Assembly (NCBI GenBank): GCA_965644495.1
Contig: CBFFSA010000066.1
Span: forward strand, 1-37,240
Source of the DNA: Perkinsela sp. CCAP 1560/9
Lineage: Eukaryota > Protista > Euglenozoa: Kinetoplastea
Reading direction: 5' to 3'
Length of the DNA stretch: 37,240 bases
This document shows positions 1,802 to 37,240 of this stretch, one piece after another (position 1 is the stretch's first letter; each line of letters begins with the position of its first letter). The translations under genes and the position numbers were made by a program. The notes under the pieces are model-generated. The model was given only the letters and a program-made list of their open reading frames with translations, had not been told where the DNA came from and did not search any database.

Positions 1802-2679
1802 ATTCTTTCTTTCTTTCTTTCTTTTCTTTCTTTTTTTTTTGGGGGGGGGAGGGGTGGTGAACCAATATTCTATTGGTGGGTTCTCTCTTTCCTTTTCAGG
1901 TAGTGGGTTTTTTTTGACATTTTCATGTCGTTGGCTGATAGGCTTTTAGGTATTAAAAACCGCCCATATTTTTTAAAACTGACTTGATGGATATCCGGGA
2001 TATTCACAGAAATCCTTCCCGTCAGGGAAATAAAAAAAAGGAAGTTTCTGTTTTTTTTTTTGCTTTTTCTTTCGACAAAAAAGAAAGAAAAGAAAAAAAA
2101 AGAAAAAGAAAAAGAGAGAGTTGTGTTCACTTTTTGGTTTGTTGGTGCACCATGTCGAACCCTGGTCCAACAAGTGGCAAATCTCCCCTCTTTGGAGGCA
2201 CAGCAGGAAACTCATCCGGTACTGGAACACTTTTTACTTCTTCTGATTCTGTCTTTTCAAAAGATGGGAAATCCTCCTTTTTTTAATTTCTTTCTTTTTT
2301 TTGCTTTCTTCCTTTTCTTCCTTTTTCTTGCTTTCTTCCTTTTCTTCCTTCACCTGATGTTGAAAAAACTTTTTGCCACCTTCTTTCTTGTTTCCCTGAT
2401 GATTACTTGGATCAATTCAATCAGATATTTCAGAATTGGGCTTCCCAGAAAGATCATATTCTTGAGAAAGGAGTTGCTTCTTCCTCTTCTTCTTCCCCTT
2501 CTTCTTCCTCTTCTTCTTCCTCTTCTTCTTCCTCTTCTTCTTCCTCTTCTTCTTCCTCTCTTCCTTTCAATTTTGCAGAGGAAGAATCATCCACAAGTTT
2601 ATTCTCTGTCTGCCGAGAAGAAATTGATCCAGAATTTCCCCGACCACGTTCAGTTGATCTTGTTCTTTCTGGAAATGTG

Positions 2680-2880
2680 TTACGTATTTCTTTTGGCTAT
2701 TCTGTTGAGAAGAAGCGATTTTCTCTTCTTTTCTCTGTTCGTGGGCGAATTCGATCAAGAATCCATTCTGCATGTGGATTTTTCAATGAAGAGAATGGAA
2801 CCATTGAACAGGGTCAATGCACATGTGAAGTGGGCCAAGGAAGTCAGTGTTCCCACATCGAAGCAGGTTTTATGGTTTTG
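2680..2880 (+). other. SWIM-type zinc finger domain (CxC...CxH) in frame with the Fanzor A reading frame
   Basis: IEQGQCTCEVGQGSQCSHIEAGFMVL (core 2818-2856), preceded by beta-strand-like FSLLFSVRGRIRSRIHSACGFFNEENG. Confidence 0.75.
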
Positions 2881-4796
2881 GCAGGAATCAAGGCTGGTCT
2901 TCTCCCTTCAATTTGGAGTAACTCTCGTTCTGGCTTCTCTCTCCCCAAAAATACTGAAGTGATTCCGTACCTCCAATCAACAGTTGCCTCCATTGCTCGA
3001 TTGGGTAAAAGACGGTTTTTGACGTGTAACGACACCCTCGTAAAAAAACAATTTGCAAAAAAGGTTTATGGGAACATGATAAAGAACCCCTGAAAGGATT
3101 TGTGAACGAAAATCTCCACTTCAGGTCATTCTCTTTTTTTTAAAAAAAGAAACACAACCACCCTTCCCCCCTCCTTCCTTCCCCCTCCTTCCTTCCCCCT
3201 CCTTCCCCCCTTCCTCCCTTTCCTAATAAAAAATTCAAATTTTGCTTTGAAGTTGAAAATTTTTATTCACTAAAAACAAACAGTAAAATCTCTTCTGCTC
3301 AACCAAAACAATCTGGAGAGAGAAAGGAGTGGGACAAGGGTCTTCAAGCAATGTGCTACGAAAAAGAACAGGAAGAAAAAAAAAGAGATTGGAAGGAGAG
3401 AGACAGATTCACTCATGTTGGGGTCGATCCAGGGAGAAGATGTGTAATTTCAGCTGTGATTTATCCAGTGCGAAATGGGGAAAATCTCCCAGATCTGTCA
3501 CGCAAAACAAGTTCTCCACGACTTCGTGATGCGTCCTCTTCTGGAGGGGAGGAGGGGAGAAAATTGGTCTCGAAGAACAATCATCAACGGTTTTTTTTTC
3601 TCTCAATTTTCTCTTCCTCTTCTTTCTGTTCTTTTTCTCTTTTTTTCTATCCTTATTTTTCTATTTTTTTTCTTTCAAAGTCACCTCTTACTATGTTCTT
3701 TTTTTCTCTCTCTCTCCCCCTTTCCCTCACACACACTTTTCTCATTTCTCATTTCTCATATCTCTCTCTTCTCTTGTACAGGATAAAAATTTTGCACTCT
3801 TATGGAAAGAGCGGAGACTGTCCCTCTTGGAAAGGGGGTTGTTTGGAGAACAAGATGATGATGTGGCAGCAAAAGTTGTTTGCCACATTGATCTCAAAGG
3901 GAGCGAGAGAGAGTTTGTGGTTGCGATGAACCCAGGCAAGAAGGGAGGAGAACCGGAGGAGACGAGCACCACCGTTGGAGAAAAGGCATTGTCTTCTCGC
4001 ACCAGTCCGGAGCAATATGGAACAGACGGACCAAAGATGATGTTCGAATATTGAAAGGAATATCGCTGTTGGAGAAAGCAGCAGTGGGAAGAAGAGGGGA
4101 AGAAAAAGTGGTCAAAACAAGAGAGAAGAGATCGGAAAAAGAAGGTTCAAGAGGACCATTTCTTTGAAACCTATGTTTTGACGAAAGGTCGATACCGTTC
4201 TCTCCTTAAGTTGGATGTGAAGAAGAAGGGAGAGCTGTCATGGAAGCGAAAGAGAAAAAAGAAACAGAGTCAAGGAAGTGATCAGAAGAAGAGATTGAGT
4301 CGAAATTTTTCGCAAAGAAGAAGAAGGAAAAGAAGAAGGAAAAGAAGAAGAAGAAGGCGATGAAGAAAATCCAAAAAAGGGACAGAAGAAACTCAACACC
4401 GATGGATGGGGAGCCGAGTTTGTGGCTTGCAAAGAAGAGAAGGAACTCAACACCTCGAACTGGGAGTCACTCCTTCGGAAAAAACGATTTTCGAAGAAAC
4501 AAAAAATGCATTCTACGATTGCGAAGGAGATCCGAACAAAAGCACATCACGTTTGGAATCAAGTGAAGAAGAAGGCAATGGAACAGACTACTTCTCTTCC
4601 TCCAGCTGATATGGATGAGTTTCCACCAATCTGTGTGATTTGGGGAGATGGGACGTTCTCTGCAACCAGCAGATCAGGTCCGATTGCCAATGACGGCTTG
4701 AAAGATGACCTTGCTCCATTCTTTGATGAATGTGTTTGGGGGATTGAAACATCATTGAGGTGGAGCTCCACTATCGCAGTCATCACGATATTAAAA

Positions 4797-4828
4797 TCGC
4801 CCTTTGAGGGATATCCCTCAAAGGGCGA
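4797..4828. repeat. Perfect 32-bp palindrome (templated inverted insertion)
   Basis: TCGCCCTTTGAGGGAT/ATCCCTCAAAGGGCGA; the left arm is absent from the aligned position in copy B. Confidence 0.9.
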
Positions 4829-4872
4829 AACGGAATTTTAAGTCTAACTCCAAGGAATCTTCCCTTGCTGCT

Positions 4873-5048
4873 GTTGTGGCCCGGCACTGATATTGCCTGG
4901 ACTCTTCCGATTTATTTCGTGTTAAACGGTTTGTTCTCTTTCCTCTTTGTTTTTTTTGGGAAGTTCTCGCAAGTTCAAATCAAATTTTGATTACGTGGCA
5001 TTGGGCATTGTTTTATTGGATACTAATCTTTTGCAATTTTGTTCGTTT
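4873..5048 (+). ncRNA. Putative omegaRNA scaffold / element right end of Fanzor A
   Basis: Strong nucleotide similarity to the reverse complement of 9271-9438 continues well past the stop codon (GTTGTGGCCCGGCAC...CAAATTTTGATTACGTGGCATTG...TTTTATTGGATACTAATCT.TTGCAATTT...TCGTTT) and then ends abruptly. This matches where Fanzor/TnpB omegaRNAs are known to lie. Confidence 0.7.
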
Positions 5049-5135
5049 AATACACTTCATAGCAATGCAAACTACCAGATTTTTTTTTTCATAAACTGCT
5101 TTCACTCGATCTCGGAGAGAAACTATCGAAACTCC

Positions 5136-8859: not shown

Positions 8860-9270
8860 GTCCCTGCGTTTGGGTTGCTTCGAGAGCAAGGGCACACAGA
8901 TGAAACAGAGGATGATTTTCCAAAAAAAAAAAAAAAAAATTCGTGGAGGCTACATTTAGGGCCCTTTTTAAAAAGAAATTTCATTTAAAACGCAAGGAAA
9001 TAATTTCTTTTTTTTTCGATCGAGGCGAATCGATCAACTTTCTCAAGAAAAGGGGTGAAGTCTTTGAAAAGAGACAGGTCAAATGAAGAAAAAAAGAAAC
9101 TCGTTCGGTCTTATAGCTCGAGCTTCTTCCAGTGCAATCTCTCCTTTTCTCTGAAACTTGGGGAGACATGATTAATGATTTTTCATCTGAGTTGAATTGG
9201 AAGATTCATCCAGACATGCTCTTCAATGTTGATGAAACTCTCCTCCGAATTGCGAAAAATGGTCAACTGG

Positions 9271-9438
9271 AAACGAGCTAAATTGCAACAGATTAGTATC
9301 CAATAAAACAATGCCACGTAATCAAAATTTGGTTTGAACTTGTGGAACTTTCGGAAAGAGGAAAAGAGGAAAGAACAAACATGTTTAACACGAACTAGGT
9401 CGGAAGGTCCCAGAGCAATCTTGGTGCCGGGCCACAAC
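9271..9438 (-). ncRNA. Putative omegaRNA scaffold / element right end of Fanzor B (overlaps the ORF end)
   Basis: Shared with 4873-5048; conservation ends at CTCGTTT (9271), after which the flank CCAGTTGACCATTTTTCG is unique to this copy. Confidence 0.7.
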
Positions 9439-12400
9439 ACTGGGCTGAAAATTTCCTTTCGCCCAGTCGGGGATCTGATGATGGATCCGGTAATGGAGCT
9501 CCACCTCAATAATATTTCTCGCTGCTGCCAGATCCCGACTCCAGGGACGGTGACATTCGCCACAGCGGTAAGCCTTCTGTTAGGGTTTGTGAATATTCAA
9601 AAAAAAAATCTCTGGAAAGAAAAGGGGTGGGGGAGAAGCAAGAGAGCAGTGATACAAAAAACCAAAGATGAAAAAAAAAGAACAATAAAAAAGTCCAAAA
9701 AACAAAAATTGTACAAAGAACAAGGAAAAACTGTGTGATTCCATTGGGTTGTGAACACAAAAGAAGAGGGAAGGAGGGGGGGGGGATGTTAAGAAGAAGA
9801 AAAAAAGAGTTTTCAAAAATAACCTGTCTCGAACAAGGAAGCCACTTGGATTCATTCTTGATGTTACTTTCCTTTGGGGCACCTTTCTTTTTTTTGAGCA
9901 AAGGTGTTTTGCAACATGGTGAGTACTTTGTGGTTCCGTACTCAATCCCCCAAACACACTCATTAAAGAACGGAGCAAGATGATCTTTCAGACCATCATT
10001 GGCAATGGGACCTGATCTGCTTGTAGCAGGGAAGGTACCATCTCCCCATACCAAAAGAATTGGTGGAAGCTCCTTGGTCATCCCAATCTCCTTGTGGTGG
10101 ACTTCTTTTGCTCTTTCCCAAACAATACGAGCTTTTGTAAGGAGTTCATTGGCAATGGTCGAGTACATTTTTTGTTTTTTCGAAAAACGTTTTTTCCGAA
10201 TCAGTGAGTTCCAGTTGCACTTGTTCACATCTTGGGCAGTGCTGCTGAACTCGACCCCCCATGAATCCCTCAGGAATTGTTTGAGTTTTTGTTGTTGTTC
10301 TTCTTCATCTTCTTCATCTTCTTCATCTTCTTCCTCTTCCTCTTTTTCTTCAGCTCCATCTTCTTCTTCTTCTTTTTTCTCTTTTTCTTTTTCTTCTTCT
10401 TCTTCTTTCTCTTTCTCTTTATTCTCGAAAAACTCTTCTTTCTCCCTTTTCTTTTTCTTTTTCTTTTCCTTTTTCTTCCACATCCTCTTTCTTTTTGTTG
10501 GTCTTTTGACTCTTCCTAATGGAGCCCTTCTACATTCCCTCTCTCTCTTTTTCTTCCAAGAATACTCTCTCTTAGCTCCCGCATCCAACTTGAGGAGAGA
10601 ACGGTATCGACCTTTGGTGAGAACGTACGTTTCAAACAAATGGTCCTCCTTCATCTTCATTTTCCGATCTCTTCTCTCTTGTTTGGACCATTTTTTCTTC
10701 CCCTCGTCTTTTCTCCAGCATCGATATTCCTTCCAATACGATGTTACCGTTTCTTCCTGTGTGATATGGGGAAGTGTACTTTCTCCAATGGTAACCACTT
10801 GCGGGTGTCTTTGTCCCTCTTTGTCCAATTGGGTTTACCACCATAAACTGTCTCTCTTTTCCTTTCTCATCAACATGGGAGACAATGGTGGCCTCATCAC
10901 CAAACCATTTGTGCTCCAATAAATCCAATCTCTTTTTTTGCCACAATTGCAACAAATTTTCTTTCTTTTTCTCCTGTACAAGAAGAGAAATAAGAAAAAA
11001 GCAAAGTGAGTGAGAGAGAACGAGAAAGGCAAGTCAAAAGAGAGAAAAGAAAAAGAGAGAAAAAAAAAATAGAAAGAAAAAAAGGAAAATATGATGATGA
11101 GATAAAAAAACCTTTTTCGGTGATTCTTCTCCTCGACCAATTTCCCCCCCTCCCCTCTCTCCAGAAGAGGAGAGTTCTGGGAGATTTTCTCCATTTCGCA
11201 CTAGACAAATCGCAGCCGAAATTACACATCTTCTCCCTGGATCGACCCCAACACAGAGTGAAAACGGGTGGTTCTCTGCTTCGATTTTCTCATTCTCTTC
11301 TTTCTCTTCTTTTTCTTTTTCTTTTTTCTCTTTTTCTTTTTTCTCTTTTTCTTTTTTCTTCTTCCTCTTCTTCCTCTTCTTCCTCTTCTTCCTCTTCTTC
11401 TCCCTCTTCTTCGTCTTCTTTTTCTTTTCTCTCTTGTTCTTCCTCCTGCATCTTGATCCATGCGTTTTGTCGAGCAACGATTTTTTTGATTGTGTCCAAC
11501 GACGTTTTCTCCCTTTGGATCTGCAATGAATCACAAACCCCCCGGAGCTCACTCATCCGCATTCGTTTCAATACTTCAACAGGTACAGCTTTAAAATTGG
11601 AAGGAATTTGGAGTTTGGTAGTTCTCTCAAAATTCGGTCGAAATTGATACCCGTCCGTCGAAAAAGAACAAAAATCGTTTTGTTTCATTAATTTGCCCTG
11701 AAACAGATTGCTCGAAGGTCCTTGGCCCCACTCTTTTCCCTGGTTCGGTGGAGCAGAAGACATTTTCCTGTTTTTGTTTTAGTGGGAGTTGAATAAAATT
11801 TTTCAAGTTGAAGGAAATTGAATTTGAGATCATGTTTTTTTGTTGTTGTTGTTGTGTGTTGTGTTGTTGTATGGTTGTGCCCCCAAGCAAGGGGGAAGAA
11901 GGGGTGGGGTGTTATGAAAAAAAAAATACCGAAGATGTAAATTTTTGTCCACAAATCCTTGCAGGGGTTTGTCTTCGTCCTCCTGGTAAACCCCTTTCGC
12001 AAATTGCAGTTTAACAATTGTATTGTTAAAGGTAATGAACCGCCTATTACCCACTTTACTAATGGGGGCAACTGTTCGACTAGCAATCCCAATTTCGAGA
12101 AGTTTGTCTTGCAGCTGCAAAAAGAATGGAACAATTTTGAGGGCATTTTTCTTGCTGAATGCGTTGTCTCTCTTCAAGGTTGTTTGCTGAAATTTAGGTA
12201 CCAATGGTGCCAACTCTTTGGAAACAAAGTTTTCGACCGCATCCCTTCCGTCTTCACTCTTAAATCCTTGCACAGCAGGAAAAGAACAGTTCTCACCTCC
12301 CAACAATTGACCCACTAAAACGCGAGAACAATAATAAGTCGAATTGTTCTTTTTCTCATCCGAGAAACGATTGGTTATCTTGTGGATGAGAAGCTTTTTG

Positions 12401-14077
12401 CAAAAGCCACGAACTCTTCGGAGACCAACAAGAAAATTCGTTATTTGTTGATTTCGGATTTGATGGGTCCACATAATCAGAATTTTCTTTCCCTTCGCTA
12501 TACCTTCCTCCAATTTCGGAAGTGGAGATTTGGAGTTGAGGGCAATTCGTAGCTGCTCCCGAAAGGAACCATACTTCGTTTCCAATTTATCACTGCAAAG
12601 GATATTGTACAACCGAACGTGACCTCGAATTCCTTGACTGCATTTCAAAGTTTGGTTCTCGAAATCGCCGGAGGTCAGCCAGGCAATACGGAGAAAGAAA
12701 TCCCAAAGAGACTCGAGTGATTCTTTCGCTTCAAGAGGAGAACAACTCTCCCTTTTGTAGCCTTCAAAGTGGACAGCCGAAAGAATTGAGGTGATATAAG
12801 CTATCTCACTCAAACACCGACTCATTGCAGGTACAAAAATCCGAAGGAACGATGTTTGTGGACAAACACTCGAGCAACTTGTTGTTCGTGTGAAAGATTT
12901 GTTCTCGACAACACCATCTTTGGTTTTGGGATCTGAAGATAAAGACAAACGTTGCTCGTCCACCAGTATATCGTCAGCTTTTGATTGAAGGGCTGCCAGT
13001 AGATCTTCTTTCGAAATATCATGGTTCTCCCACGTCAGTTTTCCTTTGTCAATCGCGTTCATCGCCTGCTTAACTGATCGTGACGTATTCAGCTTTCTAT
13101 AACCTTGTATTTTTGCATCCCCCACAACCTTCTGATAAGAAGAACTATTGAAAAAAAAAAGAAATCAATGAATTTGAAAGTTTCCTGAAATAAGAAAAAA
13201 AAAATAAATCGCAAACACACACAAAAAAAAGAGAAATAAAGCGAAAAGTAGAAGAGAGAACTTTGAAAGTGGAGGTTGTGAGGTTGAAACCAATAAAGGA
13301 GCAGGCTTTGTATGATGACTCTTCTGAGACAAAGTTGAAGGAGACTGACCAAATACACCAGCAGAGGAAGAACTGGAGCAGCGTTTTGTGCGAGTTTTCG
13401 AAGCATGTTGCTGAAGGTGGTGTGGATTAACTTGTGGTGTTGGGTGTTGGGTGTCCAACATCAATACACTTGAACGAGGAGGTAATGGTGGCAGTAACGA
13501 CGATGATGTTTGTGGTTCCTTGAGCATCGTCCTAAATTTTTTGCCTTTCGGTTTGTTTTCCAGGCTCAACCGACGATTCTGAGAGGTTGAGTGAGGATCT
13601 TGAGAAGGTTGTGTTTCACAGTGTTGAGCTGATGCTTCAGTAGTAGTGATACCACCTGAAAATAGAAAAAACAAGAAGAGGACAGAGAAGAGAAAAGTGA
13701 GACAAGAGTGTTAATCGGAGGAGAGAACACTGAGAAAAAACCTTGGGAATCCTTTGGTTGTTGTTGACCTCCAGCAGGGCCAGAGAATAAGGGATTGGAG
13801 TTAGTAAACTCCTCATCATCATCATGTTTCGCTCTTTTGGTTGGAGGACGATCAGTTGTTTGTGGTGAATTGAGTGCTGAATGACTGCTGAGTGATTGCT
13901 TTCTACTGCTGGAAAACATTTTTTTTTTTTAATAACAATAAGGGAATAATAATAAGGGAAGCAAAAAAAAAAGATCGAAAAAAGACCTCTCCACCCACTA
14001 CTCCTGTTGCTAGGCGACACTTCCATCTGCATTGGTGATGCTTTTGTCTTTTTCTCTTTTTTCTCCGGAGTCTCCAT
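9385..14077 (-). CDS. Large spliced Fanzor1-like RNA-guided nuclease, copy B (roughly 1,250-1,300 aa; two apparent frameshifts; 5' exons uncertain)
   Basis: FSTDGYQ; RuvC-I VGVDPGRR (Asp 11241-11243); LLVWGDGTFP; RuvC-II WGIEYGTTKYSPCC (Glu 9941-9943). After intron 9577-9823 (GTTATT...CTAACAG) the frame reads KAYRCGECHRPWSRDLAAARNII, giving the CxxC and RuvC-III Asp (9532-9534), with TAA at 9385-9387. Other introns: 10974-11111, 11768-11929. Frameshifts at ~11355 (A-run) and ~10830. Start is ATG 14077 or 13919. Confidence 0.92.
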
Positions 14078-15365: not shown

Positions 15366-15496
15366 CAGCATTTGAAATCAACCACATCAAATCAATCTCC
15401 CAATCCCTCCCCCAAGAAGAAGAAGAATACCATTCCCAATCCGTCTACATCACAATTATCACCAAACTCCTCATCCAAACAACTTCAATTTTTCCA
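15366..15496 (+). pseudogene. Inverted ~130-bp copy of part of the gene at 16006-17571
   Basis: Near-identical to the reverse complement of 16798-16934 (AFEINHIKSISQSLPQEEEEYHSQSVYITIITKLLIQTTSIFP), followed by stop codons. Confidence 0.85.
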
Positions 15497-16005: not shown

Positions 16006-17571
16006 TCACCAAAAACTTGGAGAAGAAGTGGTTGAGACACAGGTCAAACCATTTTCAGTTGTAATTTTGAAATTGGATTTGAGACAAAACTTAATTGAAG
16101 AGATCAATGATGAAAAAGAAGGATCAAAGGAAGGAAGAGTTTTCAATAAATTGCAAAAACAAGATGGACTTGCAGCAGCTTTCTTATGGACCAAATCATT
16201 TGTCAAAATCAAAGAATGGACAAGAGAGATCGAAAATGATCCACTTTCCAAAATATTGTTGATGAGAGAAGTCACCTCTTCAAAGACAAAGATTCCCAAA
16301 GACTTTGATTTGGTCATATTGATCAGAACGGACATAAGAATTGTTGATTTGGCATTGGGAGAAGCAATTGGATCAATGGCAACCGCATGAGCAACAGCAG
16401 CAAGGCTATTTGAATCTCCTCCAACCAATCTCTTTTCCCATCCTCGCAAGCGAAGTTGACAAGAAGCATCTTGTGAACAAACTCCAACATTAACCATTTG
16501 AGAAAGAAGAGAGATTGAGAGAATCTGACTCAACCTGGGGAAGTATTCTGTGATTATATCTTCAAAGATTGAGAGAGAGGGGGGGTGAGAGGCGGAGAGA
16601 GAGAGGAAGGAAGAGAGGATGGAGTTGAAGGTTTGGTCTGGGGTGGGAGAGAGAGAGAGAGAGAGAAGGATATTGGAGAGAATTGTGGGGTTTGGGTGGA
16701 AGAGAAGGAGAGAGAGGAGAGAGGGTTGTTGGTGTTGGAGTTGGAGTGATGGAGTTGTTGGAACTGTTGGAGTTGATGGAGTAGTTGATGGAGTTGATGG
16801 AAAAATTGAAGTTGTTTGGATGAGGAGTTTGGTGATGATTGTGATGTAGACGGATTGGGAATGGTATTCTTCTTCTTCTTCTTCTTGGGGGAGGGATTGG
16901 GAGATTGACTTGATGTGATTGATTTCAAATGCTGTTAATTTTTCTCGGTTTTCTTTTTCTCTTTCCCCTCTTTCCTCTCTTTTCTCTCTTTTCTCTCTTT
17001 CTTCTTTTTCTCTTTCTTCTCTTTCTTCTTTTTCTCTTTCTTCTCTTTCTCTTTTTTCTTTTTCTCTTTCTTCTGTTTCTCTTCTTTCTTCTCTTTCTCT
17101 TTCTTCTTCTCTTTCTTTTTCTTCTCTTTCTTCTCTTTCTCTTTCTTCTCTTTCTCTTCTTTCTTCTCTTTCTCTTTCTTCTTTTTCTTCTTTTTCTTCT
17201 TTTTCTTCTCTTTCTTCTCTTTCTTCTCTTTCTTCTCTTTCTCCTCTTTCTTCTCTTTCTTCTCTTTCTTCTCTTCTTTCGAGTTTTTCTCTCTCTCTTC
17301 TGTTTCTCTTTGCTCTGTTTCTCTTTGCTTTCCTTTTTTCTTTTTGTCTTTCTTCTCTTTCTTCCCTTTCTTTTCTTTCTTCCTCTCCTTCTTCTCTTTC
17401 TCTTCTTTTTTCCTCGTTTCTTTCTCGTTCTTCTCTTTCCCGTTCTCTTCTTTCTCTTCTATTTTTCTGTTTCCTTGCTCTCTGTTTCTCTTTTCTCTCC
17501 CTTTCTCTCTCTTCGCTTTCGCTCTCTCTTTCCACCCCTTTTATCTCTCCTAAAACCAGACCACAATCCAT
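16006..17571 (-). CDS. Hypothetical protein: E/R/K low-complexity N-terminal part followed by a helical region
   Basis: 521-codon ORF with a protein-like C-terminal 300 aa; start uncertain; no family recognised. Confidence 0.5.
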   Translation of the reverse strand: MDCGLVLGEIKGVERESESEERERERKEKQRARKQKNRRERREREREERERNEEKRREREEGEEERKEREEREERQKEKRKAKRNRAKRNRREREKLERREEREEREERGEREEREEREEREEKEEKEEKEEREREERREREEREREEREEKEREEEREREERRETEEREKEKREREEREKEEREEREKEEREKREKREERGEREKENREKLTAFEINHIKSISQSLPQEEEEEEYHSQSVYITIITKLLIQTTSIFPSTPSTTPSTPTVPTTPSLQLQHQQPSLLSLLLFHPNPTILSNILLSLSLSPTPDQTFNSILSSFLSLSASHPPSLSIFEDIITEYFPRLSQILSISLLSQMVNVGVCSQDASCQLRLRGWEKRLVGGDSNSLAAVAHAVAIDPIASPNAKSTILMSVLINMTKSKSLGIFVFEEVTSLINNILESGSFSISLVHSLILTNDLVHKKAAASPSCFCNLLKTLPSFDPSFSSLISSIKFCLKSNFKITTENGLTCVSTTSSPSFW

Positions 17572-32892: not shown

Positions 32893-35800
32893 ATGCTGCT
32901 GCCATTTATGATAAATATCATTTTTAAAGAAAAAAAATTGATCTTCTCTCCCTCCAGGAAAAAGACAGGACGAAAACAACAAGATGAACAAAACTTCTCA
33001 ACTTTTGCTGGGAACCCCAGTTCTCGTCATTCCTCTTCTTTTTCCTCTTCTTCCTCTTCCTCTCCTTCTCCTTCCCCCTCCCCTTCTCCTTCTCCTTCTC
33101 CTTCTCCTTCTCAGCAGCCTTCTCCTTCTCCTTCTCCTTCTCCTTCTCCTTCTCCTTCTCCTTCTCTCCAATTAAAGTTCAAGTTTACATCTCGGCCGAC
33201 TGTGTCTCGATCATCTCAATCATCCCGACAATCCCATTCTCAACCCCATACTCGATCCCATTCTCCTTCTCCTTCTCCTTCTCCTTCTCCTTCTCCTTCT
33301 CTTTTTACTTCTCTCCAATCCCATTTCAAGTTACCATCTCGGCCGACTGTGTCTCGATCATCTCAATCATCCCAACAAGCCCATTCTCGATCCCTTTCTC
33401 TTTCTCCTTCTCCTTCTCCTTCTCTTTTCTCTTCTCTTCTCTCTTCTCTTCTCTCTTCTCCTTCTCCTTCTCCTTCTCCTTCTCCTTTTCCTTCTCCTTC
33501 TTTTAGAGAATTAGGGACTACAAAATATGAAAAATTAAATTTGCCGTATGTTCGAGAACTCCCCTCCAAAACTTCTTCTCCTTTGCAAACCTTTACATTA
33601 GGAACCAACGATGAGATGGACACCTCAATTTTTCTTGAAGAAGAGAGACCTTCCTCGGCCACATCACTGAATGATCTTTCTTCTTCTTCTCCTTCCCCTT
33701 TTCCTTCTCTTTCTCCTTCTCAGCAGCCTTCTCCTTCTCAACAACCTTCTCCTCCTCTTCTTATTTCTTCATCTCTTTCTCTTTCTCAGCAGCCTTCTCT
33801 TTCTTCAACTCCTTCTTCATATCCTCAATCATCTCGTTGTTCTTCTCAAACCCTCAGTCCTTCTCATCCTCCTCCTCAGACCCAGAGTCCTCGCCGTTTC
33901 TCTTCTCCTCTTCTTCCCCCTCCTCTTTCTCCTTCTTCTGGTCCTTCTAGAAAAAGAAAAGGAGATCAGCAGACTGGGATCCAAAATGCTTCAATGTATC
34001 AGTATCCCAAAAGAAGATCTATTTCTCAGTTTCTCCCTTCTTCTCCTCATGAGGGTGTTGTCTCCCCTCCAGCAGGCTCCTTGAAGAAGACAGAAGAAGA
34101 GTCCTCCTCCTCTCAAGAGTCCTCTTCCTCTTCAGAGTCCTTGAAGAAGACAGAAGAGTCCTTGAAGAAGACAGAAGAAGAGTCCCTTACAACTCGTAAA
34201 TTCAAGTTGAACCGAATAGTGTACCCGAAAAAGATGCAATGGTTTACCTCATACCTCCAAGATGTTGTTGTGGCAGCGTCTCGATTATCGATTGAAGTCT
34301 CGTATTTTTCAAATGCGTACATTACATATTGTCTCGAGAATCAATATCAACTTCCCTTTGATTCATTTTCAGAAATTGAAATATTCTATAATGAATGTTT
34401 GCATCTTTTTCTGCCGAGTAGACGAAAATTTCCAGAACCACAATATAACTTTACGGCTTCACTTCGAAAGAAGATGACTGAGTTTTATAAGATGGAGTAT
34501 ACTTGTGTGGATGAGGCTTTCTATTCTAAACTGGAAGAGTATTTCCAGCAGAAGCTGAAAGGAATGATTAAGGACGTGAAGCACCAAATTTCAAGGGAAA
34601 TGCTGGTAAACGCCAAAAACCACTTTCAAGAGTCGTCAAAGGGGTTTATCAAACGAGTGATTGCTTTTGATGCCCACAAGTTGTTATGGGAGGATGTTGG
34701 TTTTCAAGGTACAGGAAAAGAGGAGAAAAGAGATAGTTGCCAAAGTGGGAAGGAGAGTGGGGATGATGATGACGAGGATCAAACTGAAGACTTTCTTGGG
34801 GAGGAGGAGAAGGAGAAGGAGAAGGAGAAGGAGAAGGAGGAGGAGGAGGAGGAGGAAGTATCTTCTGTTCATGAGAATTCTGGAAAGAAAAAACTTGTGA
34901 CACAGACAAAGGTGCTTGCAGTTGCGGATCGAGTTGCCACCTATCTTTGGCCTCCCTCGAAAGAGTTCACAGGGGTCAAAAAATCAAAGAGAGAGAGAGA
35001 GAGGACCAAATTGTCGAACAACTTGTTAAGGGGGAGAGGGGTAAATTTCCAGGGCTCTTTAATGAGGTGGTTGAGTACGAAAAGAATTTAGAAAATCTTC
35101 TCAAGTACTATGGCAATCTGATGGACCGGATAAACTGAGAGTCAGAGGGAGAATGAGAAACACAGAGAGCAGTCTCAGCAGCAGCAGCAGCCACAGCAGT
35201 TGACTTTGTTTACGAATGATGACTACTGGCGATCGATGCCAAAAGTGAAAAAGTGGGCCTTTCTCCCAATTCGGTCTTACCAGATCCATCATCTTCACAT
35301 TGACACACCATTCCTTGTGACAATCTACCAAAGGGCGCACCTACAAATGTCCTGTTCTAAACCAAAGCGTATGTTAAAACGTAACCACCACCACCACACG
35401 GATGTTGATCTGCTTTCTGTCTGGAAAAAATGCTTAAATATCGAAAGCATTCCTCTCGAAAAGCCAAAAGAAAGATTTGCCTTCTTCATCAAGACTGATG
35501 GTGTTCAGTGTTCTGCAGGAATTGTTCAGCCACGGGAAATTTGCTCTCCTCCTTCTCCTCCTCTTTCTTCTTCCCCTCCTCTTTCTTCTTCCCCTGTTAA
35601 GCCTCCGAGAAAGAAGAAGAAAGAACAGTCACCAACAAAGAAGAGAAATCAAAATCTGAAGAAATTGAGATATTTTCTCCCAAAAGATTATGATTTGGTT
35701 GGCTCATCAAAAGATGTGATTATGAAACTCTCCCATGAACTTCAGACGATCTCCTCCTCCTCTTCCTCCTCCTTCTTGAAATTTGACAAGCGTGCGAATC

Positions 35801-37240
35801 AAAATGAATGCTCTAAACTCGTGGCAAAATTGATGGAGGATTTTGACAAGACTTCCCCTTCTTCCCCTTCTCCTCGGCCTTCTTCTTCTTCTTCTTCTCG
35901 TTCTCGTTCTCGTTCTCGTTCTCGTTCTGGTTCTCATTCTCGTTCTGGTTCTCATTCTCGTTCTGGTTCTAATCCATCCTCTTCATCACAACGTTCCTCA
36001 TCCATTAAACTCTCCAAATTGAAACGAGGTGTCTTTTTGGAAGAACAAATTGAAAAAGATGATGGCATCGACCTTAATTCAATCATTGGGGTGGACCCTG
36101 GCCACAAAGCCTTCTTAACCTCTGTGGTTGGAGTGGGTACAGAGAATCAGAAGTTTTTTGAACTCACACGTGGGGAGTATCTTGGTAAATCAAAGATTTC
36201 TTCTGCTCGAGCGAAGCGAACTTGTTGGAGAGAAACTGTACCACCTGATCAGAAGGAAGCTTTGGACAAACTTGCACAAATCCAGGTCCGAGGTGAGACG
36301 AAATGGTCCTCCCTGAAACCAATGATGGGAACCCGTGTTGAGATCTATGCAAAAGTTCTCTCGTATTATCACACAACACGGTTCGCGAACCAGAGATTTC
36401 GGGTTTGGCGTTTCAAGAACAAGGTGGTGGATAACTTTTTCTCCTTGGTGAACAAGTATGCAAAATCGATTGTGGTGTCGCAACAACATGGTGGTGGAAA
36501 ACAACGGTTTATCCCAACTGTCGCTTTTGGGAACGCAAATTTTCCCAGTTTTCGGTCTTCAGATGGAGTCAAAGCGCCAATTCTCACGTTGCGAAAAAGA
36601 TGGAGTAACACAGCCCGTGTTGTACTTATTGATGAGTACAAAACATCTCAACTCCATTCATCACCCACTTGTCATCACGCAAAGCTCCAGGGTTTGACAA
36701 AACGGCAAATCGAGGATCTTCACCTTCCAACAAAGAAACGAAAATCTCGCCACCCACCATCAAAGATGCCCTCCGAAACAACTCAACAACATGCTCCTGA
36801 GGAAAAAAGGACTTGGAGATGGACAAAGAGGAGAAAGAAAAAGAGAGAGAAAGATAAAAAGAAAAAGAAAAAAAAAAAGAAGGGAAAAGAAGAAAAAGAA
36901 GAAAAAGAAGTGGAAGAGGAAGAGGAAGAGGAAGAGGAAGAAGAAGAAAAAGAAGAAAGCAAAAAGAAGAAAGAACGAAGAGAGAAACAAGAAGAGAGAG
37001 AGAGAAAGAAAAAAAGAAACAAAGAAAAGAGAGAAAGGAAGAAAAAGACGAGAAAAGAGCAAGTAAAGAAGAAGGTTGAGGAGGTGTTTGAGGCAGTGAA
37101 AAGGAATCGTCGTCCACCGGAATCTTGGATCCATAAGATAACGGAGTTGCAGCAGCATCAAACTTCTATGTCACTGCACAAGGACGATGAACAACAAACA
37201 CAACACGCTCCATCACCATCAACCAGCTTGCTCACCAAAC
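32893..37240 (+). CDS. Very large Fanzor1-like nuclease, copy C (>1,400 codons, runs off the window end; two apparent frameshifts; start uncertain)
   Basis: N-lobe TTRKFKLNRIV...LQDVVVAASRLSIEVSYFSNAYI. An open frame from 35134 to the window end, not in the ORF track, reads KWAFLPIRSYQIHHLHID, FFIKTDGVQCS, RuvC-I IIGVDPG (Asp 36094-36096), ELTRGEY, VAFGNANF, RuvC-II VVLIDEYKTSQ (Glu 36634-36636). Frameshifts at the GA repeat ~34995 and at ~35133. Confidence 0.92.

Follow-up and report, generated by a model that had tools for sequence, protein, structure and literature searches.

A conserved, sharply bounded block behind two decayed Fanzor-type genes of Perkinsela sp. CCAP 1560/9: probable transposon right end and plausible guide-RNA template

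Introduction

A contig of the kinetoplastid Perkinsela sp. CCAP 1560/9 carries two copies, here called A and B, of a Fanzor-type gene, and behind both of them lies a block of similar sequence that breaks off abruptly, which raises the question of what this block is: the template of an omegaRNA, the cis-acting end of a transposon, both of these, or simply a part of the messenger or of a local duplication. The stretch of DNA analysed here, called the window, comprises 37,240 nucleotides (GCA_965644495.1, contig CBFFSA010000066.1, positions 1 to 37,240). A previous sequence-only reading had proposed that the block is an omegaRNA scaffold, that CGTTT marks the end of the element and that the sequences just beyond it are two different guides. 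Such a layout has precedents. In SpuFz1, a 75-nt scaffold extends across the 3' inverted repeat and is followed by a variable guide of 14-15 nt, and gene-less "ghost" elements occur as well; in GtFz1, the omegaRNA overlaps the coding end (PMC10432273). The scaffolds of omegaRNAs are 75-150 nt long (Xu et al., PMC11423790).

Results

The shared block and its boundary

Using blastn, positions 4872-5048 of copy A (+) were aligned with positions 9439-9271 of copy B (-) over 179 columns at 81% identity (E = 1e-37). TCGTTT forms the final bases of both blocks, and the two flanks bear no resemblance to each other over their first 20 nt (A, AATACACTTC...; B, CCAGTTGACC...), which bears out the claim of a conserved block with a sharp boundary. 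The same reading had described the copies as highly similar for about 115-160 nt beyond the stop codons, a description that holds in part. High similarity is found in the terminal core (93%), and it is lower in the coding tail (80%) and in the T/C-rich spacer (68%) ahead of the core. In copy B, the open frame enters the block by 54 nt, so that the non-coding part amounts to 114 nt, and in copy A the frame of the corresponding coding tail is disrupted by a TGA and by indels. The divergence of the introns of the two copies was confirmed, with 47-66% identity in windows of 60 columns, values that come from low-complexity introns which are hard to align. The features of both copies are collected in Table 1. 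The terminal core of copy A is a candidate omegaRNA scaffold and may at the same time form one side of a terminal inverted repeat, and the use of the A and B flanks as guides is inferred by analogy with known systems.

Table 1 Features of Fanzor copies A and B in the window
Feature	Position	Strand	Observation
Copy A body, 5'-truncated decayed Fanzor	2979..4872	+	matches B only from B 12076
Copy A decayed coding tail and T/C-rich spacer	4873..4957	+	80% / 68% identity to B
Copy A terminal core, right end of element	4958..5048	+	ends ...GTTCGTTT; boundary at 5048
Copy A flank, putative guide position (AATACACTTCATAGCAATGC)	5049..5068	+	unrelated to the B, L003 and L014 flanks
Copy B flank, putative guide position (CCAGTTGACCATTTTTCGCA), T5 run 9259-9255	9251..9270	-	flank comparison
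Copy B terminal core of right end, ends ...AGCTCGTTT	9271..9353	-	same end: L003:5945, L014:12667
Copy B T/C-rich spacer	9354..9384	-	68% A vs B; variable length in L014
Copy B last 18 codons and stop TAA (9387-9385), within shared block	9385..9439	-	translation; identical C-terminus in P0002
Copy B last exon: second CxxC of zinc finger, RuvC-III Asp (9534-9532)	9385..9576	-	translation
Copy B intron, GT..AG	9577-9823	-	skipped in X1 contig and P0002
Copy B large exon: RuvC-II Glu (9943-9941), S-P-C-C knuckle (9922-9911)	9824..10974	-	translation
Copy B exon with RuvC-I DPG (11243-11235), GAA-rich low-complexity stretch before it	11140..11763	-	open frame
Copy B first long open exon, 397 aa, no Pfam match	11935..13125	-	L014 homology continues upstream to 14598

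The same end in further copies

Searches with the block DNA, a 20-nt core pattern and the protein returned only A and B from the organism's own assembly (21 Mb, 110 contigs), in which the two copies lie 4.2 kb apart and tail to tail, and the protein search for A-type relatives returned P0002 alone. The pattern GGATACTAATCTNTTGCAAT matched four metagenome contigs, all of them by chance and between unrelated flanks, and it was not found in viral contigs. Further copies were provided by L003 and L014, two contigs of one public assembly that were reached via protein P0001 and its cluster mate P0012. Both L003:4009-5946 and L014:10483-12668 match copy B at 96% down to 9270 and then pass into unrelated sequence; the match between L014 and the window extends upstream to 14598, and L003 derives from an L014-like element by internal deletion. 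The 5' limits differ among all copies and the 3' limit is constant, and after GTTT the four copies A, B, L003 and L014 continue into four different sequences in four unrelated contexts. Conservation beyond CGTTT, which would have spoken against an element end, was looked for in L003 and L014 and stops there. Breaks at 9270 and at 5048/5049 were also found in the contigs of the sequencing runs X2, X3 and X5, where the loose ends are dissimilar and of low agreement. Since the same 3' end recurs in L003, L014 and the contigs of X2, X3 and X5, it is the end of a mobile unit and not the edge of a local duplication. The earlier proposal that CGTTT is the element end is thereby upheld, and the core is very probably the right end of a transposon.

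In run X2, the summed contig depth over the B element was 5-20 times that of the adjoining contig, a hint that the assembly may not contain all copies, contig depth not being the same as copy number. The terminal 40 nt of copy A (5009-5048) were also seen in contigs of X1, X2 and X3 with unrelated sequence on both sides, which points to copies, either gene-less or left-end ones, that the organism's own assembly does not contain.

Alleles without the insertion were sought for L003 and L014, as had been recommended, but no clean one was found, and neither a transposon-adjacent motif nor a target-site duplication could be defined. The 3' flank of L003 matched the site G000:C71:24106 (L020:1500) at 92.6% over 107 nt, starting with the first base after GTTT, which assigns the C found behind GTTT in three copies to the flank. 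This site showed no match to the 5' flank of L003 and is not a clean empty site, and because the match is partial (107 nt, 5' flank absent), it does not allow a motif or a duplication to be defined. A search of the genome with the 3' flank of L014 gave no match. As a side observation, the flanks of all three B-type insertions each contain a T5 run 8-16 nt beyond the end (9255-9259 on the minus strand, L003:5953-5957 and L014:12679-12683), an observation made post hoc with a background chance of 7-11% per 16-nt window, and copy A has a T10 run at +32. The T5 runs could be a polymerase III-type stop that sets the guide length, or a target preference.

The gene is of Fanzor type and its family is transcribed

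Researchers have defined Fanzors by a DPG motif, by a Glu that precedes the first knuckle position by six residues and by an Asp 4-8 residues past the second CxxC (PMC10711439), and all three signatures are present in the B-type gene. RuvC-I reads GVDPGRR in copy B and also in copy A (about 3421-3441), and DPGK in homologues. RuvC-II of copy B reads GIE-YGTTKY-SPCC, in which the Glu stands six residues ahead of the first knuckle position. The S-P-C-C knuckle is invariant in the homologues P0002-P0016, whereas Fanzors and TnpBs carry C-x-x-C; in the HMMER alignment with GtFz1, its Ser stands opposite the first Cys of C-P-S-C, and the spacing is kept. The last exon of copy B reads KAYRCGECHRPWSRDLAAARNI... 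and contains RuvC-III as C-G-E-C-HRPWSR-D (CxxC-x6-D).

A Pfam scan of the exons of the window, taken one by one, returned nothing. A full HMMER scan found 11 relatives of the protein among 1.8 billion representatives. Against PF07282 (TNB), whose cut-off is 26.3 bits, P0002 scored 22.0 bits, and three of these relatives, P0008, P0009 and P0010, exceeded it with 35.1, 32.8 and 31.4 bits. Among solved structures, the family profile matched Guillardia Fanzor1 (E = 6.6e-4), the mimivirus TnpB-like L79 (2.6e-3) and Parasitella Fanzor1 (PpFz1; 6e-3). The AlphaFold model of the homologue P0016 is of low confidence (pLDDT 58.5), and Foldseek with this model gave a best E value not below 0.13, with IscB, Cas12f, SpuFz and PpFz near the top. 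By its sequence the gene encodes a Fanzor-type nuclease with a TnpB-type RuvC domain, for which RNA-guided cleavage may be expected by analogy. A third, distant Fanzor candidate at 32893-37240 was not confirmed by the family profile, which gave low-complexity matches alone (E >= 0.01).

The Fanzor family gene is spliced and transcribed. P0002, the protein of an MMETSP transcript, is 98% identical to copy B and reproduces the predicted splice and stop exactly. Four GT..AG introns, 9577-9823 among them, are skipped by contigs of X1, a run presumed to be RNA, and retained by those of X2, X3 and X5. At 10093 and 10126, the X1 contig departs from copy B in the same way as L003, which indicates that a sister copy, and not B itself, was seen transcribed. 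This contig ends near 9373, upstream of the core, and among the contigs of X1 there was no RNA over 9271-9372 or across either junction.

Both copies in the window are damaged

The description of the locus as two Fanzors stands as far as the gene type is concerned, given the DPG, the Glu, the CxxC-x6-D and the profile match, but is overstated with regard to A and B, both of which are damaged. Copy A lacks the sequences corresponding to B 11704-11315 and B 9942-9518, the latter with the zinc finger and RuvC-III, has its frame interrupted by a TGA (4052-4054) and shifted near 3085, and is joined to foreign sequence at 2979. Upstream of it, the open frame 2407-3093 (+) gave a weak match to a SWIM zinc finger that does not reach the cut-off (E = 0.089), and it bears no relation to the upstream exon of B. 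Copy B has a private 13-nt insertion at about 10802-10814 (-), reading ACAAAGACACCCG on the gene strand, which shifts the frame and is absent from L003, L014 and the contigs of X2 and X3; a further frame change lies in its GAA-rich run, where the frame of L014 is continuous. The left end of the element is missing from both copies. A near-perfect inverted repeat was also observed at 15366-15496 / 16798-16934 (83 nt at 99% and 77 nt at 90%), enclosing about 1.3 kb; it lies just beyond 14598, the limit of the match between B and L014, and may represent another element that truncated B. In their own assembly, A and B are relics, A without the nuclease core and B with frame breaks. As both lack the left part of the element, their putative guides are unlikely to serve homing here, and the likelihood that either of them forms a working nuclease-RNA complex in its own genome is low.

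The core is more conserved than the coding sequence

Within the last 83-91 nt, 71 of 76 positions of the terminal core are identical between A and B (93.4%). In the best gapless exon segments, the identity at codon positions 1, 2 and 3 was 86%, 90% and 72%, a pattern indicating that the protein was under selection for most of the divergence of A and B. The identity of the core exceeds that of every codon position, and its comparison with third codon positions (119/166) gave p = 8e-5 in Fisher's test. The core was kept at 93% in copy A despite the death of the gene. Within it, a GGCATTG patch occurs once in B and twice in A, owing to a 7-nt duplication, and is lost in L003, with invariant stretches on either side.

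Structure of the putative RNA

Folding of single sequences gave no signal, with z-scores of +1.19 for the B block, -0.68 for the A block and -0.56 to +0.64 for the cores. The energy of the consensus fold obtained with RNAalifold equalled that of column shuffles (z = -0.09 and +1.06). The covariation that had been proposed as a check did not appear, since 0 of 42 predicted pairs were compensatory in an alignment of four close sequences with low power. The 3' regions of L015, L016 and L017 could not be aligned with the A/B block and so contributed no covariation, and no Rfam family matches the block. The small hairpins named in the sequence-only reading are present in the letters, but the folding tests found them no better than chance. 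A weak 5-bp hairpin, UCAAA/UUUGA, with an outer CCAC/GUGG stem is recurrent.

The left end and a sister family

At L014:5056-5120, the presumed left end, the right core recurs in inverted orientation with 78% identity (E = 1.5e-7), and a fainter, more decayed left-end trace is found in L003. These sequence matches suggest degenerate terminal inverted repeats of about 75 nt. No left inverted copy was found for A and B in the window, the two ends of L014 gave no match as a target-site duplication, and none of the genes called inside the elements matched a Pfam family of transposases.

A sister family, D, which also carries a Fanzor and measures about 6.4 kb, was found in another public assembly (L017:3385-9786, L018:547-7416 and L019:1-4650). 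Its three copies have sharp common left and right ends in three different flanks, and the right end lies 225 nt past the stop, at ...GTCAATCCTTTGACCCAATA. The layout of this right end is the same as in A and B, so a conserved non-coding tail with a sharp end is a trait of the family. No inverted repeat was found between the ends of family D. L016 has only the last ~40 nt in common with family D, and it folds better than chance (z = -2.25).

Discussion

The layout of the right end is of an already known kind, that of SpuFz1 (PMC10432273). As in SpuFz1 (Saito et al. 2023, PMC10432273), a conserved non-coding block of about 75-90 nt that includes the (here candidate) right inverted repeat follows the gene and ends at the boundary, the flank past the boundary varies from copy to copy, element ends probably also occur without a gene, and RuvC-I is DPG. 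Unlike SpuFz1, the Perkinsela gene has introns, a long body rich in low complexity and a 397-aa upstream exon, the elements of its family exceed 5 kb (2.1 kb in SpuFz1), the knuckle of the family is S-P-C-C, the core shows neither a fold signal nor a predicted first stem-loop of 7 bp, and the copies in the Perkinsela genome are truncated and broken. GtFz1 (PDB 9cer) is the best match of the family profile among solved structures, at low identity and with about 80 residues covered. Like the omegaRNA of GtFz1, which overlaps the coding end, the block of copy B includes the end of the coding sequence; GtFz1 has an Asn in place of the RuvC-III Asp (NRN aligned with RD), whereas the Perkinsela family keeps the canonical Asp. 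With the TnpB proteins of bacterial IS200/IS605 and IS607, the family appears to share a nuclease core of RuvC and zinc finger (TNB), and as with the omega/reRNA of bacterial TnpB, the RNA template would lie at the 3' end of the gene, stop at the right end and take its guide from the flank. Unlike in bacterial TnpB systems, the host is a eukaryote, the gene is spliced, RuvC-I is DPG and the Glu stands at the alternative position, no TnpA was seen, and a possible long inverted repeat takes the place of subterminal hairpins. The Fanzor2* nucleases in cut-and-paste transposons (Yoon et al. 2023, PMC10711439) resemble the present family in the canonical RuvC-III Asp and probably in their degenerate inverted ends; unlike there, neither a target-site duplication nor a transposase was identified in the Perkinsela-family elements.

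By analogy with SpuFz1, the core is a plausible template of a guide RNA, and we incline slightly towards the fuller proposal that a DNA transposon of several kb, with an intron-bearing Fanzor as its last gene, has the core (A 4958-5048, B 9353-9271) as its right end, and that the core also serves as the omegaRNA template. Following the precedent of SpuFz1, GtFz1 and TnpB, the core and about 12-20 nt of the flank would be transcribed as a right-end (omega) RNA, the scaffold of this RNA would bind the nuclease, and its flank-derived 3' part would guide the cleavage of matching DNA beside a transposon-adjacent motif. The core probably doubles as a terminal repeat for transposition, as it is inverted at the left end of L014.

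The block could instead be an ordinary 3' untranslated region within a local inverted segmental duplication, with the boundary as the breakpoint, which would account for the finding of just two copies in the assembly, arranged tail to tail at a distance of 4.2 kb. We regard this as extremely improbable, and it is already contradicted by the occurrence of the same end in the unrelated contexts of L003 and L014 and at many breaks of read contigs; moreover, conservation of the core greatly exceeds that of third codon positions, and the 5' limits vary by copy while the 3' limit is fixed. A function of the core for the gene itself, at the level of DNA or mRNA, for instance in the polyadenylation or the stability of the Fanzor messenger, would fit its AU-rich composition and its position 31-114 nt past the stop of a transcribed gene. 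Such an element would hardly be kept at 93% in copy A, where the gene is dead, nor would it be expected to stop exactly at the element boundary or to recur inverted at a left end, and we consider this explanation very unlikely as well.

The alternative with the greatest weight is that the core is a cis-acting transposon end only, that is, a terminal inverted repeat or recombination site served by a transposase in trans, and that it specifies no guide RNA. The constraint on the core and its copy at the left end, which is inverted in L014, are equally well explained by a transposase-binding terminal repeat, and this counts against the omegaRNA reading. The occurrence of the terminal 40 nt alone in contigs of X1, X2 and X3, the negative fold and covariation tests and the restriction of the likeness between family D and L016 to the last ~40 nt point in the same direction. 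Yet in every Fanzor and TnpB tested so far, a right-end RNA overlaps this very position (PMC10432273, PMC11423790), and a purely cis-acting end fits poorly with elements in which no transposase gene and no target-site duplication were seen, as it does with the ends of family D, which have no inverted repeat. We therefore judge an end without a guide RNA to be rather unlikely, though well worth keeping in mind, and retain the combined function as transposon end and omegaRNA template as the preferred reading. Bolder still would be the view that the elements belong to a deeply divergent, undescribed Fanzor lineage of a marine protist (S-P-C-C, introns, elements of 5-7.5 kb), whose near-unstructured right-end RNA is selected even where the nuclease is dead, with orphan guides that are served in trans; this is speculative and, in our estimation, improbable.

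As it stands, the locus mainly confirms the architecture of SpuFz1, described in 2023, in a new lineage, and both copies found here are relics. It also offers a clean natural example of right ends that are retained while the nuclease decays. Should the core prove to be a functional omegaRNA template, its Fanzor family would be a highly divergent one whose knuckle is unusual and whose scaffold, about 85 nt in length, is AU-rich and folds weakly, and this would inform both how little RNA structure such nucleases need and the mining of compact editors.
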